Notes under the pieces: model-generated
The model's input: only the letters and a program-made list of their open reading frames with translations
Database searches by the model: none
Told to the model about the DNA's origin: nothing
Sequence record: NC_005260.1
DNA length: 64,000 bases
Direction: 5' to 3' (one strand)
Position numbers and translations under genes: made by a program
Part shown: in pieces, positions 33,965 to 60,785 of the stretch
How the letters are laid out: each line of letters begins with the position of its first letter
Numbering within the stretch: position 1 is the first letter of the stretch

Positions 33965-34040
33965 TTTCGATGTGTCCATAATAGCAGGTTGATTTGATGT
34001 GTCAACAACAAAACAAAAAAGCCACCCGAAGGTGGCTTAA
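33965..34040 (-). promoter_or_regulatory. terminator + early promoter cassette
   Basis: GCCAC-CTTCGG-GTGGC-TTTTTT then TTGACA...TATTAT. Confidence 0.65.
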
Positions 34041-34055
34041 ATTTATCTTAACTGA

Positions 34056-34334
34056 TTACTCACTATCCCAAGACCGTTTTACGTTACGTCCATCACGACG
34101 AGGGCGAGACTTGTCTTTAGCCGGTTTTTCGATATGTTCACGTTCGTCCATGATGGACTTGATCAGATCGTAATAATCGGCCAGATTGTGAGCGCGTTCC
34201 ATATCCGCATCAGAACAATTCTGATTATCTGCATGATACTGTGCGGCAGCGCGAGACTTCAACACGGTTTTACGCAGTGCATTCAGACGTTCGGTAGTCA
34301 GATTGCGGAGTTTTTTCTCAGTTAGAAATTCCAT
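34056..34334 (-). CDS. hypothetical protein
   Basis: ORF track 92 aa. Confidence 0.7.
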   Translation of the reverse strand: MEFLTEKKLRNLTTERLNALRKTVLKSRAAAQYHADNQNCSDADMERAHNLADYYDLIKSIMDEREHIEKPAKDKSRPRRDGRNVKRSWDSE

Positions 34335-34383
34335 CTTTGTTTCCTACAGGTGGTTTTAATACACTATCACGAATGACAGATTT

Positions 34384-34505
34384 TGGAGGGGAAGACGGGA
34401 CTCGAACCCGCGACCAACAGTTTGAATTTGCGTTTATTTGCGGTAAAGAATCTTAATCAGATTCCGCTTTGTGCGACTACTGCTCTACCACTGAGCTACT
34501 TCCCC
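34384..34505 (-). ncRNA. tRNA-shaped RNA with ~54-nt insert replacing the anticodon loop (GCAA-module RNA A)
   Basis: GGGGAAG/CTTCCCC-T-CCA acceptor, GCTC-AGTGGTA-GAGC D arm, GCGGG-TTCGAGT-CCCGT T arm; insert contains GAATCT/AGATTC hairpin then TTTACCGCAAAT. Confidence 0.8.
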
Positions 34506-34513
34506 AAATTTTT

Positions 34514-34649
34514 ACAACACTATGCTGGCGGTGCTGGAGTCGAACCAGCGTTACAGGCTTAACAGGCGAGTATTTATTGCAGGAATCATTCTTGACAGAA
34601 TGAATTTTACAGTGTCCTACCACTAGACGAACCGCCAGCATAATGTTGT
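34514..34649 (-). ncRNA. tRNA-shaped RNA with GCAA module in place of the anticodon arm, extended acceptor (RNA B)
   Basis: TGGCGGT/ACCGCCA plus ~12 extra bp, D arm GTCTAGTGGTAGGAC, T arm GCTGG-TTCGACT-CCAGC; TCATTCT/AGAATGA hairpin then TTCCTGCAAT. Confidence 0.8.
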
Positions 34650-34777
34650 TTGTTGTCGCGATACTGGATTCGAACCAGTGACGTTTCTCGATGTGCCCAC
34701 ACGCAACGGAATCGAACCGTTCTCGATACTTCCTCGGCTAGAGGACGTTCTCCCAACTGAACTAATCGCGACAACAA
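34650..34777 (-). ncRNA. tRNA-shaped RNA with two T-arms and a 5-nt anticodon-position loop
   Basis: AACGG-TTCGATT-CCGTT and ACTGG-TTCGAAT-CCAGT inside one TCGCGAT/ATCGCGA acceptor. Confidence 0.75.
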
Positions 34778-34791
34778 AACTATATTAACAC

Positions 34792-35268
34792 TTATTTCTT
34801 AGAAGGTAAACCATTTTCGTTGAACTTTTTCACTGCGAGTTTGAACTTCAAACGAATACACGGCTCACGACTCGGATCCACTTTCATGATCTTGGCATTT
34901 CCACGGTGAATCAGCGAGTAAACATCTTCGATCTGATTCCGAGCAATCAGTTCCGCGAATTCTTCGCTGTATCGAATCTGGGTAGTGAAGTCAATAAACT
35001 CCTCGCCAGAAATCAGATCAACACAACGAGTTACGGCACCATCATACATGTAATCCGTATTCACAACAACACGAACATTACCAGCACCGTCGAAAGAGAT
35101 CATCGGGATGCCGAGAGGACGTTTGTATGAAAGCATGATCAAACGATCTTTCTCTTTACGTTCTTCGTATTCTTTGCGCTTTTGTTCGATTCCAGCCCAT
35201 TTGCCTTCTTCGACGATAGCAGTATAAGTATTCGGGAACAACAGTTTAGCCAGATATTTCATACTCAT
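34792..35268 (-). CDS. hypothetical protein
   Basis: ORF track 158 aa. Confidence 0.7.
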   Translation of the reverse strand: MSMKYLAKLLFPNTYTAIVEEGKWAGIEQKRKEYEERKEKDRLIMLSYKRPLGIPMISFDGAGNVRVVVNTDYMYDGAVTRCVDLISGEEFIDFTTQIRYSEEFAELIARNQIEDVYSLIHRGNAKIMKVDPSREPCIRLKFKLAVKKFNENGLPSKK

Positions 35269-35298
35269 AATAACTTCCTCATTGATTTGATATTCGTA

Positions 35299-35643
35299 TT
35301 ATAGCGACTCTGGATTACCAGTCAAGCAAAAATATGCGATTGCGATCAAAATTTTACACACAACATGAAGTGCCTGATCTTGATGTAATCCAATCTTACC
35401 GTTGCACTTAGCATAATCGATGATCCAATGACTTACAAGCTCTGCCAAACTAAGCCAAACGCTCTTGGTTGCAACGTATACCACAAGCGCATGGGTAGCA
35501 CTATGGGCAGTTAGCCAGTAAATCCAATGCACTCCATAGAGTGGAGAGTTGATAGGATTCTTACCACGAGCAATACTATCGGATTGCAGAACATAATCGG
35601 CCACAAAATGACCGATAATCAGAACATATAGAATCTCAAACAT
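35299..35643 (-). CDS. DUF3307-family membrane protein
   Basis: GHFVADYVLQ, H..H, SHWIID..K, DQALH. Confidence 0.8.
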   Translation of the reverse strand: MFEILYVLIIGHFVADYVLQSDSIARGKNPINSPLYGVHWIYWLTAHSATHALVVYVATKSVWLSLAELVSHWIIDYAKCNGKIGLHQDQALHVVCKILIAIAYFCLTGNPESL

Positions 35644-37260: not shown

Positions 37261-38697
37261 TTAGAAGTCGATACCGACGTAACGGTCGCTCATGATCTTG
37301 TCAAGCATGATTTGCATCGGGTTAAAGTCTTTCGCACTCAGGATTGTCTCCATGATTGCGGGACTGAAACCGGACACCAACGCAGTGCCTTGATCATCTT
37401 TGGTCACCGGATTGTTAGTCGGGCGCGGGCAAAGATTCCAGAATACCAGCTTCGGCATTTCGTAACCAGCATCGCGGTAAGTCTGACGAATCACCTCAAA
37501 GTTGGTACGTTCGCGATCACGCATACGATAGTATCCGCTGTAACCGCCGTCAGCGATGTTGAATTCCATGTCAGACAAGACGACCATCATAGTCGGCATA
37601 TCTTCTTGCGGAACTCGATTGCGTACAGCGCGATCAAGAATGATCTTGAATGCACCGGCAAAGTTGGTAGAGCCACCCCAAGGAGCGCGTCCCAGATGAT
37701 TCACCATGCTTTGCAGATCGTCGCCTTTCGCTTTGATGTTGTAGAACTGAGGATTATCATCGAAGGTAATCACTTCGTTCTTGAACACGCCACCAGAGCG
37801 TTCGCCGATATACAGACCCAGAGAAATCGCGATGTCCATAGCAGACAGACCAGCAACAGCAGTCGGAGTGCTCATAGAACCGGAAACGTCAACCATTGCG
37901 ATTACGTTTTCGGTAGAGCCAGCCATCCAGTCGCGTTGTGCTTTCCATTGCGCGTCAGCAGCAATAGAAGAACCGGTACGCATGGACTTGATCATGTCAT
38001 ACGGGTAAACTGCACCAGCGTTGATCTTAGCCTCGCCCTTTTTCAGAGACTCAAGGTAAGCAACATAACGCTCGTTCGCGTTTTTCAGGAATGCTTTCTG
38101 ATATCGAGCAGAAGCAACAGACGGCAGTTTACCGAACTCAATGCCATCCCACTGACGAGCACACATCTTTTGTTCAACGGTGTTCGACATACGGACGATA
38201 GTGTGACGGTATTCTTTGGCAGTCATCTGCATGGCTTTCGCTAGAATGCCAGCTTCTGAGCCTTTGCGCGGTGCCCACTTTGCAGCAAGACCGTTTTGCT
38301 TGGTCATGATTGCATCAACCATGATCGCAACAGCGGCGTCCTGAATCGGAGAGTTGAACATCGCTACCACATCTTTGAAGCGACCGATTTCAGGAGTGTT
38401 CATCAGAACAACGGTAGCATCAACCGGGTGACGGTGTGCAAGGACTTTCAGCAGGCGGATGAATTGTTCGCGTTCACCGGCACCACCGCGAATATCGCGA
38501 GCCCATTGCAGAATGCGAACAGCCCAGTCCGGAGACTCGGTATAAGCATCAACAAACATCTGAGTTAGATCTTTCCCGCGAGAGGAACCAATCTGAGAAA
38601 ACAGATTCAGACACTTGTCGCCAGTAGTGTAGTTAGTAACAGCACCGTTAGCAGTGCGGGCTTGAGCTTGTACCATTGCATTCATAAAAGTAGACAC
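37261..38697 (-). CDS. DUF2828-family TROVE/Ro60-like protein with vWA (MIDAS) domain
   Basis: TANGA, ARDIRGGAGER, AKWAPR, DVSGSMS, TFDDNP, WGGSTNF, LSDMEFN, FWNL; probable GTG start at 38697 with AGAGGT RBS. Confidence 0.85.
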   Translation of the reverse strand: MSTFMNAMVQAQARTANGAVTNYTTGDKCLNLFSQIGSSRGKDLTQMFVDAYTESPDWAVRILQWARDIRGGAGEREQFIRLLKVLAHRHPVDATVVLMNTPEIGRFKDVVAMFNSPIQDAAVAIMVDAIMTKQNGLAAKWAPRKGSEAGILAKAMQMTAKEYRHTIVRMSNTVEQKMCARQWDGIEFGKLPSVASARYQKAFLKNANERYVAYLESLKKGEAKINAGAVYPYDMIKSMRTGSSIAADAQWKAQRDWMAGSTENVIAMVDVSGSMSTPTAVAGLSAMDIAISLGLYIGERSGGVFKNEVITFDDNPQFYNIKAKGDDLQSMVNHLGRAPWGGSTNFAGAFKIILDRAVRNRVPQEDMPTMMVVLSDMEFNIADGGYSGYYRMRDRERTNFEVIRQTYRDAGYEMPKLVFWNLCPRPTNNPVTKDDQGTALVSGFSPAIMETILSAKDFNPMQIMLDKIMSDRYVGIDF

Positions 38698-38710
38698 AGA
38701 ATTACCTCTT

Positions 38711-39310
38711 TCAGGTTTGTTTGAATTTGTCCCAATCATAGGACAGTTTGTTTTTCCAGCACTTGCGGCAGAACGAGATATAACGTTGTTCAGCCCCAAT
38801 GCAAATTTGTTCACCGCGACGGATAACATTGCCGTTATCATCAACGCGAGCTACCATACAGGATTTTCTACCACAATCGCAGATACCAGACAGTTGTCGG
38901 ATTTCATCTGAGATCGAAAGCAATGCCCTAGAGCCGGGGAACAAGTTACCGAGAAAATCGGTACGCAGTCCGTAGCACATCACAGGGATATCCAGCTTGT
39001 CAACTACATCAGATAGTTCCCATACTTGTTTTTCAGTTAGGAACTGCGCTTCATCAACAAGAACACAGGCGATTTCGGACAGTTTACTCTCTTTTTCGAT
39101 CATTGTAAACATGTTTTCATTAACATGTACACATCGGCATTCACGCTGGATACCGATACGTGATCCAATCGTGCCTTCCGTTCTCGTGTCAAATGCTGGT
39201 TTGTACAACAGAACGTTTTGATTTCTCTCGTTGTAGTTGAAAGCCACTTGCAGTAATTGAGTGCTCTTTCCAACGTTCATCGAGGCATGGGTGAAAAATA
39301 ACTTAGCCAT
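38711..39310 (-). CDS. tk: thymidine kinase
   Basis: SMNVGKST, VLVDEAQFL, YGLRTDF, CDCGRK, YISFCRKC. Confidence 0.95.
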   Translation of the reverse strand: MAKLFFTHASMNVGKSTQLLQVAFNYNERNQNVLLYKPAFDTRTEGTIGSRIGIQRECRCVHVNENMFTMIEKESKLSEIACVLVDEAQFLTEKQVWELSDVVDKLDIPVMCYGLRTDFLGNLFPGSRALLSISDEIRQLSGICDCGRKSCMVARVDDNGNVIRRGEQICIGAEQRYISFCRKCWKNKLSYDWDKFKQT

Positions 39311-48638: not shown

Positions 48639-48781
48639 GGATTCACATACGGGAGCGGTGACTAACCCGCGTTACTTTTATATGCTGTTCCCTCTCAGCC
48701 GCACATCCAACTACCGAAGCAAAGGAGTGCTATCCATTAATAGTAGAGTTTTGTTTTTGTATTGATTGCAGAAGTGAATCC
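48639..48781 (-). ncRNA. GCAA-module RNA C (long internal domain)
   Basis: GGATTCAC/GTGAATCC terminal stem followed by TTCTGCAATCAAT. Confidence 0.6.
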
Positions 48782-49101: not shown

Positions 49102-49207
49102 GAAAGACTTTTTAACTGCCACCTGGACTCTTGTGCTAGAGAGTTGAGGAATCGAACCTCACCGTTTTCTTAAAATAGAAAAGTTATATTGATTGCTGAA
49201 ATCTTTC
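49102..49207 (-). ncRNA. GCAA-module RNA D with circularly permuted tRNA-like domain (YrlA topology)
   Basis: GAAAGATT/AGTCTTTC stem, CAGCAAT, T arm TGAGG-TTCGATT-CCTCA, stacked closed stem ACTCT/AGAGT, AGGTGGCA D-like loop. Confidence 0.75.
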
Positions 49208-49229
49208 TTAGCACGGTAAATCATTATTG

Positions 49230-49311
49230 CGGAGGAGGTTGGACTCGAACCAACATAGGGTTATTACCCGCAGATTAACAGTCTGCCGCTCAACCTTTGA
49301 GCCACACCTCC
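49230..49311 (-). tRNA. tRNA-Asn(GTT) with long variable arm, no encoded CCA
   Basis: GCAGA-CTGTTAA-TCTGC, GGGT-AATA-ACCC variable arm, 10-bp acceptor extension. Confidence 0.8.
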
Positions 49312-49337: not shown

Positions 49338-49399
49338 GGAATGAACTTTTAAGGCTATTTCAAATAATGGCTTTTTAAGTTAGTTGCTGAACTCATTCC
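49338..49399 (-). ncRNA. standalone GCAA-module RNA E
   Basis: GGAATGAGTT-CAGCAAC...TTAAA-AGTTCATTCC; own promoter GTTTACA(49434-49440)-17-TATAGT(49411-49416). Confidence 0.75.
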
Positions 49400-49461: not shown

Positions 49462-49515
49462 AGGCTCACTTTTTGATTTCATCCGCAGAAAAGTTTTGAT
49501 TGCTGAACGGAGCCT
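49462..49515 (-). ncRNA. standalone GCAA-module RNA F
   Basis: AGGCTC-CGTT-CAGCAAT...AAAAAGT-GAGCCT; own promoter GTTTACA(49546-49552)-17-TACAAT(49523-49528). Confidence 0.75.
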
Positions 49516-52906: not shown

Positions 52907-53008
52907 TCCGGGTGGCGGGACTCGAACCCACAACCCACTGCTTCTTCTGTACTCTCGTTAGAAAGCACAGGAGAAGGCAGATGCGCTATCCTGTTGCGCC
53001 ACACCCGG
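52907..53008 (-). tRNA. tRNA-Arg(TCT)-like gene with a 28-nt insertion in the anticodon loop
   Basis: CCGGGTG/CACCCGG, GCGC D stem, CTGC-CTTCT[28 nt]AA-GCAG, T arm; no CCA, 7-bp acceptor extension. Confidence 0.7.
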
Positions 53009-60325: not shown

Positions 60326-60785
60326 CTTTCACTCCCTTAAAGCCCATTCGCTTTAGTGTGTCTTCGGTGATTATATTAAATCTCCACCCTTTTTGTTCGC
60401 ATACTTTGATTGCAGCTTTCCATTTTGACGTATTAACGCCCCATGTATATACTTCCTGTGCGAATCTCTTTTTCGCTGCTGCTGTATTTCGATTCGGCAT
60501 CTGCGGAGGCATTGTTTCTTTGCGAGGCTTAACTTCCCAAAGTGAAATGCTGCCATTTTTCCAGCACACAGTCATGTCCATGAAGTATCGTCTTTTCTTT
60601 CCGTCTGCTTCTGAGAAATAAGGAATAACCGTTTCTTCCGAATTCCACCATTTGACTTCTGGGTTTCTGTCAAGCATTTTCATGATGAAAAGCTCCCAGC
60701 TACTCCGATACGTGATCTTGGAGGCATCGCCTCTGTATTTTTCTTTGTTTTCAGGCACAAACTTGCCTTTATATGTTTCTGCCAT
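60315..60785 (-). CDS. 4: gp4 head completion nuclease
   Basis: YKGKFVPENKEKYRGD, YRSSWE, WNSEETVIPY, RRYFMD, EVKP. Confidence 0.92.
   Translation of the reverse strand: MAETYKGKFVPENKEKYRGDASKITYRSSWELFIMKMLDRNPEVKWWNSEETVIPYFSEADGKKRRYFMDMTVCWKNGSISLWEVKPRKETMPPQMPNRNTAAAKKRFAQEVYTWGVNTSKWKAAIKVCEQKGWRFNIITEDTLKRMGFKGVKDDI

Follow-up and report, generated by a model that had tools for sequence, protein, structure and literature searches.

Two tandem tRNA-shaped genes of Aeromonas phage Aeh1 belong to a conserved family of phage RNAs with a structured module in the anticodon arm

The 64,000-nt stretch of record NC_005260.1 analysed here (the window) comes from Aeromonas phage Aeh1 (100% identity), a T4-like phage of the Straboviridae; all coordinates are those of the window, and the record coordinate (NC_005260) is the window coordinate plus 62000. 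Three transfer RNA (tRNA)-shaped units lie in tandem on the minus strand, designated C (34773-34654), B (34637-34525), and A (34505-34384). They are flanked by orf158 (34792-35268) and rI.1 (34056-34334), with every feature on the minus strand; the main tRNA cluster, which comprises 23 ordinary genes (43.6-52.8 kb), lies about 9 kb away. The original prediction, made from the sequence letters, described A and B as two tRNA bodies with intact acceptor, D, and T arms, in which the anticodon arm had been replaced by a shared "GCAA module". Our analysis places A and B, arranged in tandem, in a family of tRNA-derived RNAs (105-126 nt) that looks specific to phages, and shows that they and their relatives are conserved structured RNAs. 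A consensus scan located a promoter-like site (TTGACT-16-TATAAT, 11/12 matches; 35298-35325, minus strand) upstream of orf158, C, B, A, and rI.1, and an intrinsic-terminator-like hairpin with a T run (34019-34038, minus strand) downstream of rI.1, which is likely to be the end of the transcription unit. From these bracketing sites, we infer that orf158-C-B-A-rI.1 is transcribed as a unit.

Gene A (34384-34505, minus strand) encodes a 118-nt tRNA-shaped body followed by a discriminator U and an encoded CCA (34386-34384). Direct reading showed a 7-bp acceptor stem, a D stem (GCUC/GAGC), and a T arm. A 5-bp closing stem, GUAGU (34480-34476) with ACUGU (34421-34417), encloses 54 nt, and an anticodon loop is absent; the Rfam tRNA model matched A with 53 bits by placing a 53-nt insertion in the anticodon loop. 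The module copy in A (34433-34471, minus strand) was detected by a module-only covariance model, R1, with 39.9 bits (E 7e-9), and consists of an A-rich strand, the hairpin GAAUCU-GAUUA-AGAUUC (34464-34448), and UUUAC-C-GCAA (CCGCA at 34443-34439). A full-length covariance model of the family, R2, gave A 95.7 bits. The GenBank label of A is tRNA-Val(CAC) for Aeh1, but in PX29 the gene is entered as a tRNA-Leu in two pieces; these conflicting annotations arise because U33 is absent and the pseudo-anticodon drifts among orthologues (CAC, CAA, or GAA).

Gene B (34525-34637, minus strand) encodes a 112-nt tRNA-shaped body with a discriminator G and no CCA, the G being followed by CAUAG. Its acceptor (UGGCGGU/ACCGCCA), D, and T arms are intact, and its D arm and body are tRNA-Glu-like when compared with the tRNA-Glu of Aeh1, yet its triplet is that of Asn. 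The anticodon stem of B is split, its 5' strand being composed of CUG (34612-34610) and GC (34567-34566) with a 42-nt insert that contains the module (34568-34609, minus strand) between anticodon-stem positions 29 and 30. The 3' strand is continuous, GC (34558-34557) followed by CUG (34556-34554), with one U-U mismatch in the stem, and the loop is a canonical 7-nt CUGUUAA (34565-34559) with the Asn-type anticodon GUU (34563-34561). This remainder of the anticodon stem-loop (34554-34567, minus strand) was identified by direct reading and a mini stem-loop scan and is invariant in six phages. The module of B comprises the hairpin CAUUCU-GUCA-AGAAUG (34602-34587) and CUGCA (34582-34578) and scored 42.2 bits with R1 (34572-34609); the complete gene scored 95.6 bits with R2 and had a minimum free energy z-score of -4.5. 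B is missed by the Rfam tRNA model, and ARAGORN calls neither A nor B. B is nearly invariant in six Aeromonas phages, with 92-93% identity between Aeh1 and PX29 or phiWae14, whereas the flanking coding sequences (CDSs) have 68-78% identity to phiWae14. The leader and trailer of B are complementary and lengthen the acceptor helix to 12 bp (34641-34522); the same pairing extends over 14 bp at the ordinary tRNA-Asn (49325-49215, minus strand) and 18 bp at the B-type gene of Vibrio phage QD01 (L007, 5000-5145), and could be relevant to processing or gene mobility.

The two predicted bodies are thus real, on the minus strand and with scores far above chance, and the architecture ascribed to A, with its closing stem, 54 nt between the strands, and encoded CCA, was confirmed by direct reading. 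For B, the intact arms and missing CCA were as described, but the statement that it has no recognisable anticodon stem was wrong. Accordingly, the view that the anticodon arm is replaced by the module does not hold for B, whose anticodon stem-loop is intact apart from the module in its 5' strand. Because the arm of B is interrupted rather than replaced, excision of the insert to give a normal tRNA-Asn is possible.

R1 detected exactly two strong copies of the module in the 64-kb window, those of A and B, in agreement with the claim that both share it. The inserts of a homologous pair in Vibrio phage QD01 have the hairpin and the following GCAA motif in common with A and B. Covariation was evaluated in an alignment of 33 sequences, with relatives gathered from GenBank phages. 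In this alignment, the module (~38-40 nt) comprises an A-rich strand, a 6-bp hairpin capped U-GNNA-A, and the sequence W-U-Y-C-N-G-C-A-A, of which only the loop G and C..GCA are invariant. Across all stems, 96% of the stem cells were paired; the six hairpin pairs were paired at 99% and had all changed on both sides, and the two closing pairs of the anticodon stem covaried too. None of 500 shuffles matched the observed values, and slid controls were ~40% paired. With an enlarged member set, the hairpin remained 97.5% paired, with changes on both sides at 6/6 pairs. In the tRNA body, U8, A14, and most of the GGUUCGA T loop are invariant, and the remainder of that loop and the D-loop GG are nearly so. 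One module is common to several unrelated tRNA bodies. An all-against-all covariation scan showed no supported pairs beyond the hairpin and the tRNA stems, and pairing of the A-rich strand or C-N-GCA elsewhere in the RNA was therefore rejected; pairing of the module in cis with the anticodon of the same RNA was rejected because relatives with different anticodons have identical modules. Because all stems covary and every helix is kept by compensatory changes, A, B, and their relatives are not decayed pseudogenes.

An exact-pattern scan of IMG/VR yielded 68 loci, and R2 was run over the window and 80 loci. The 76 hits to long members represented 68 distinct RNAs of 105-126 nt with scores of at least 48 bits; all but two exceeded 54 bits, and most were between 70 and 117 bits. 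Ordinary tRNAs (~72 nt) scored 45-56 bits under this model, compared with more than 95 bits for both A and B. Members were found in Aeromonas T4-like phages of three genera, KVP40-like Vibrio phages, cyanophage BUCT-ZZ01, Erwinia jumbo phages, Aeromonas phage LAh_9, a 735-kb uncultured phage, and many IMG/VR contigs. Five module-bearing tRNA mimics are arrayed in tandem in IMG/VR 3300033696_000004 (L064, 270-937). KVP40-like Vibrio phages carry five copies each, within 2.6 kb (Vibrio phage phi-pp2; L178, 9003-11548), at the promoter-proximal end of the tRNA region and downstream of gene 1 and 57B/Acb1. A "2H RNA ligase" annotated near the Vibrio copies was set aside as a candidate partner, as it corresponds to Acb1/57B in ordinary T4 synteny. 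A somewhat stricter pattern applied to 185,579 bacterial and archaeal genomes gave 10 matches, none of which the family model confirmed, so that, as far as a pattern search can show, the family appears to be restricted to phages.

Rfam holds no family for module-bearing tRNA-shaped RNAs, as judged by cmscan, and BLAST of two IMG/VR subfamilies against GenBank phages returned no match. We found no description of the family in the literature, the nearest being the "enigmatic introns" of Lak phages (PMC6784885), with which the module was not compared. Annotations of family members are inconsistent, including Val, Leu, Phe(aaa), Asn, Ala, tRNA-OTHER, pseudo, and small hypothetical proteins, and ARAGORN is silent on A and B, in line with the original prediction, which expected tRNAscan to miss such genes or to mis-call them as intron tRNAs. 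In several recent Vibrio phage records, short "hypothetical protein" CDSs overlie these RNA genes or ordinary tRNAs (L007, 5010-5273; L010, 1189-1456; L011, 846-938); these CDSs are annotation artefacts. Such misannotation distorts phage tRNA inventories and codon-usage studies, and would be corrected by a covariance model of this type. The A/B pair hence marks an unannotated RNA family and is more than two odd genes.

The members differ in how the module is joined to the anticodon arm. In approximately 40 of the 68, including B, it interrupts the anticodon stem on its 5' strand, usually following position 28 or 29 and occasionally 26, and the remaining stem is kept together with a 7-nt loop bearing the signature Y32-U33-NNN-R37. 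Approximately 22 members, including A, are without such a loop and carry the module within a closed 4-5-bp stem (A, QD01-A, and LAh_9) or after an AUGUUAA-like sequence ("N-type"). The insertion point among members is 26/27, 28/29, 29/30, 38/39, or the whole loop, and the split-stem layout of B recurs, with compensatory changes, in many relatives. The triplets in the retained loops were mainly GUU (9), GUA (7), UUC (4), UCU (3), and GUC (3), with UUU, CAU, GUG, and a few odd ones (AGG and UAG) also present; some loops were 8 or 9 nt long. The triplet differs among near-identical relatives in which the module and flanking stem are constant: one IMG/VR group has GUC, GUU, UCU, or UUC, another has GUA or GUG, and the loops in the Vibrio B group are AUUCAUAA, AUUCUAA, and CUUCAAA.

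By comparison with a canonical tRNA, the cloverleaf arms and tertiary bases are present and the stems are 96-99% paired, but neither A nor B has an uninterrupted 5-bp anticodon stem with a 7-nt loop containing U33 and a conserved anticodon. Aeh1 has an ordinary tRNA-Asn(GUU) in addition to B, and in phi-pp2 two long forms with GUU occur next to an ordinary tRNA-Asn of 73 nt; because these ordinary genes coexist with the long forms, the latter are redundant as decoders. A-type members have no anticodon loop and a drifting pseudo-anticodon, yet they are conserved with CCA, which argues that the function shared by the family is not decoding. The earlier claim that these RNAs cannot decode appears well founded for A, given its missing U33 and drifting triplet. 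The ordinary tRNA-Asn(GUU) of Aeh1 (49229-49311, minus strand) measures 83 nt and carries a long variable arm, GGGUAAUAACCCUAU, an unusual feature in a tRNA-Asn. At ~49140-49165 (minus strand), the spacer downstream of this gene contains a solitary T-arm-like hairpin, GAGG-UUCGAUU-CCUC, around which no tRNA body could be recognised.

The third non-decoding gene of tRNA-like shape, gene C (34654-34773, minus strand), adjoins B on the upstream side and lacks the module. Besides acceptor and D arms, it has a 5-bp hairpin (loop of 4-5 nt) in the place of the anticodon arm; its variable domain is branched and includes a second T-arm-like hairpin (AACGG-UUCGAUU-CCGUU) and a GUG-UGGG-CAC hairpin, after which the true T arm follows. 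Conservation of gene C extends over six Aeromonas phages, whose consensus fold includes some compensatory changes, and its 5' part is annotated tRNA-OTHER or tRNA-Ala in relatives. A fourth tRNA-like gene without the module (52907-53008, minus strand) lies beside tRNA-Leu; it scored 49.8 bits with the Rfam tRNA model, ARAGORN was silent, and a long, imperfectly paired hairpin (~45 nt; fold z-score -6.2) takes the place of its anticodon arm. The motif of the 3' half of the module (Y-N-GCAA-Y-CAA-W, typically UUCAGCAAUCAAU) also occurs in spacers of the main tRNA cluster, away from tRNA bodies. A motif search gave 6 matches in the window versus 1.9 expected, with sites at 49188-49198, 49495-49505, 48761-48771, and 60405-60415 (all minus strand). 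The copy at 49495-49505 and a variant, UUCAGCAACUAA, near 49391 are located ~12-15 nt downstream of early-promoter-like GTTTACA...TAnnAT sites. These spacer copies may be a separate protein-binding or processing signal.

We favour, with a probability of roughly 0.4, the reading that the family consists of stable non-decoding tRNA mimics that display the module, often together with an anticodon bait. The features kept among the members (7-bp acceptor stem, U8, A14, D-loop GG, GGUUCGA T loop, and often CCA) are those needed for L-shape folding and recognition by end-processing enzymes. A and B would be transcribed together with orf158 and rI.1, and their transcripts would mature in the manner of tRNAs into stable RNAs. 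They are proposed not to decode, because the module occupies the part of the anticodon stem that is gripped by the ribosome. The tRNA body would provide processing and stability and present the module to a tRNA-directed factor, to which B-type members would additionally show the anticodon loop as bait. The target may be host anticodon-arm nucleases or other tRNA-targeting defences or, alternatively, a tRNA-binding protein. GUN, UUC, UUU, UCU, and CAU triplets represent the classes attacked by known anticodon nucleases. This anticodon spectrum, together with the counter-defence picture of phage tRNAs (PMC12409363, PMC12445682), makes anticodon-arm nucleases the most plausible target; AriB targets Lys, Thr, and Asn tRNAs (PMC12409363), and OLD cuts at the anticodon stem (PMC12445682). 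The scaffold or decoy idea of the original prediction was reasonable and coincides with the reading favoured here.

Several points weigh against the mimic reading. It was drawn from the comparison of sequences and structures, and the argument that the ribosome would exclude these RNAs is one of general knowledge. A decoy role leaves the strong conservation of the module unexplained. A conserved neighbour protein was sought by open reading frame clustering at 39 loci and none emerged, the only clusters being lineage-specific ones, an HNH endonuclease, and DUF2828 in 4 loci. Finally, removal of the insert would make B-type members perfect tRNAs.

This last point is central to a rival explanation, according to which the module is a new short tRNA intervening sequence. 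In B-type members the insert would be removed, after which the two halves could be ligated, by phage RNA ligases for instance, or the nicked stem could simply stay paired; either way, a working tRNA-Asn would result. Removing exactly 42 nt from B gives a 5-bp stem with one U-U pair, the loop CUGUUAA, and the discriminator G; in the relatives, covariation links both halves of the split stem to the 3' strand, and Y32-U33...R37 is retained in the loop. Some members are already annotated as intron-containing, and "enigmatic" introns were reported in megaphage tRNAs (PMC6784885). We nevertheless consider splicing unlikely, as it cannot explain A, A-type members having no anticodon loop to restore. 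The inserts of 42-54 nt have no group I or small-ribozyme Rfam match at E up to 10; cmscan of 34000-35000 at this threshold found no intron or ribozyme family, where the group I intron core (P3-P9) usually exceeds 200 nt. In addition, inspection of the alignment by eye showed no conservation of the junction sequences, no formal bulge-helix-bulge motif search having been made; the insertion point ranges from 26/27 to 38/39 or takes in the whole loop, the long forms occur alongside ordinary tRNA-Asn genes, and the module is conserved far beyond the needs of a passive spacer. We know of no bacterial or phage enzyme for such splicing. Alternatively, B-type members could be working decoders in which the module serves as an extra arm that hides the anticodon stem from stem-cutting host nucleases. 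The continuous 3' strand lets a coaxial 5-bp helix with a normal loop form, and close relatives switch anticodons within isotypes whose synthetases read the anticodon. Altered or shortened anticodon stems are also a known means by which phage tRNAs evade stem-cutting nucleases (PMC12445682, PMC12409363). This explanation seems quite improbable to us, because it requires an insertion of ~40 nt at backbone positions 28-30, where the small subunit contacts the P-site tRNA, because neighbours of A-type and C-type cannot decode, and because ordinary copies with the same anticodon are present and the loop of some members is 8 or 9 nt long or carries an odd triplet, for example AGG or UAG.

That the genes are tRNAs inactivated by a selfish insertion, decaying and functionless, is highly improbable. 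tRNAscan-based papers list them as pseudogenes (Nolan 2006, PMC1524935), and the module occurs in several unrelated tRNA bodies, like a mobile insert; however, compensatory changes hold all stems, including the insert hairpin, in distantly related phages, the bases that make tertiary contacts vary little or not at all, and the family persists in T4-like phages of Aeromonas, Vibrio, and cyanobacteria. Decay in relatives, which the original prediction had raised as an objection to itself, is contradicted by the covarying stems of the 68 members and by the identity of B to its phiWae14 counterpart (92%), which makes B more conserved than the neighbouring genes. A further explanation involves Aeh1p164 (37261-38841, minus strand), a protein with DUF2828, DUF7788, and VWA domains (Pfam) that is annotated "RNA-binding protein" and has homologues in 710 phage records (tblastn), labelled "Ro-like" in mycobacteriophages. 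A and B would be Y-RNA-like partners of this protein, with the module binding the protein and the tRNA body recruiting a tRNA enzyme. The DUF2828 gene is located on the same strand 2.7 kb upstream of A/B in Aeh1, lies immediately upstream of the module-bearing gene in cyanophage BUCT-ZZ01, and is no more than ~1.5 kb away in two IMG/VR contigs. In four independent lineages, at most 5 kb separates a DUF2828 homologue from module tRNAs; the KVP40-like Vibrio phages and the 735-kb uncultured phage also hold both features. In bacterial Ro60 systems, the YrlA partner is a tRNA mimic whose gene lies no more than 4 kb from that of the protein (PMC4201824). However, a module-specific link was rejected by the reciprocal search, in which 76 other IMG/VR DUF2828 loci had no module within 5 kb, and in Vibrio phages the module and DUF2828 are 11-13 kb apart. 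Pfam gave no TROVE match for the protein, to which solved TROVE proteins were similar at E ~0.3-1 only. Membership in YrlA was rejected on model score (17.5 bits versus a cut-off of 69), motif (GNCGAAN(0-1)G is absent from 34381-34780), and topology; the best hit spans the T arm of B and the D arm of A, and tandem tRNAs are a known type of false positive for the YrlA model (PMC4201824). A partnership with the DUF2828 protein is therefore improbable. The points against each led us to rate the decoder, DUF2828-partner, and decay explanations as less likely.

The DUF2828 gene has a wider association with ordinary tRNA genes. An ordinary tRNA array is located 0.2-2 kb downstream of it, on the same strand, in Felix O1 and in ~19 of the 47 IMG/VR loci scanned; sites with this synteny include 37261-38841 (minus strand) of the window, L015 (8119-9534), and L095-L161. 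These arrays and the negative reciprocal test indicate that the DUF2828 protein goes with tRNA arrays generally, and the synteny suggests that the DUF2828/DUF7788/VWA protein has a tRNA-related role.

Phage tRNAs are now regarded mainly as countermeasures to tRNA-cutting host defences. If the mimic reading is true, a conserved phage-only family of tRNA-shaped RNAs with an extra domain would represent an RNA-based layer in that conflict, all the more because many members also have an anticodon loop that changes among close relatives; if the members are instead spliced, they would represent a type of tRNA processing not known in bacteria. A more far-reaching proposal, which we put forward tentatively and regard as somewhat doubtful, is that these genes are "programmable" phage tRNA decoys with a constant body and module and an exchangeable anticodon loop; equally novel would be a protein-dependent tRNA splicing or repair pathway. 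As programmable decoys, they would have the loop retuned in each phage lineage to trap or neutralise the nucleases of local hosts, and A-type members would have dropped the bait. Under the splicing or repair alternative, phage-infected bacteria would remove an insert from within a helix.

The family has features in common with several known systems. Intron-containing tRNA genes include those with bacterial group I introns in the anticodon loop, those with archaeal/eukaryal bulge-helix-bulge introns, which have two 3-nt bulges flanking a 4-bp helix at the exon-intron junctions and depend on a splicing endonuclease, and those of Lak megaphages (PMC6784885). As in these genes, the anticodon arm is interrupted in an otherwise normal tRNA gene, but the family insert usually breaks the 5' stem strand at 28/29 or 29/30 rather than lying at 37/38, is 42-54 nt long without a group I core, and constitutes one structured module in unrelated bodies. 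Transfer-messenger RNA (tmRNA) similarly combines an acceptor/T-arm body with a large functional domain in place of the anticodon arm, whereas members of the family have a full D arm, are ~115 nt long, and lack pseudoknots and G3-U70. Identification as tmRNA was rejected, as ARAGORN and Rfam gave no such call here and pair 3-70 of B is G-C by our own reading. A tag frame read from the invariant GCA was likewise rejected: although an in-frame stop precedes the T arm in several members, the frame is broken by 1-nt indels among close relatives. T4 RNAs C and D (species 1 and 2) are also small stable RNAs at the end of a T4-like tRNA cluster, and the Vibrio copies of the family lie in the T4-syntenic region downstream of gene 1 and 57B. 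Homology to rnaC or rnaD, for which there is a by-eye likeness (the rnaD hairpin followed by GCG..AAUAA, and GCCGUAAGCC in rnaC), was not supported by the models, as R1 and R2 applied to T4 68000-76000 matched neither gene and detected ordinary tRNAs only.

YrlA RNAs, which occur in some phages as well (PMC4201824), resemble A and B in being tRNA mimics with D and T arms that are recognised by tRNA enzymes and encoded near the gene for a ring-plus-VWA RNA-binding protein. Their topology is opposite, however: YrlA ends at the anticodon side and its acceptor-like stem is closed, whereas A and B end at a normal acceptor stem. In contrast to Ro60 systems, the neighbour protein is DUF2828, which has no recognisable TROVE domain and is not specifically tied to the module. 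The same design is seen, by analogy, in the engineered "tRNA scaffold" for recombinant RNA, in which a foreign RNA is placed in the anticodon stem of a tRNA, so that the body secures processing and stability and the anticodon arm is replaced or interrupted by the payload. Unlike such constructs, the RNAs described here form a natural conserved family with one specific module, and many of its members keep an anticodon loop.

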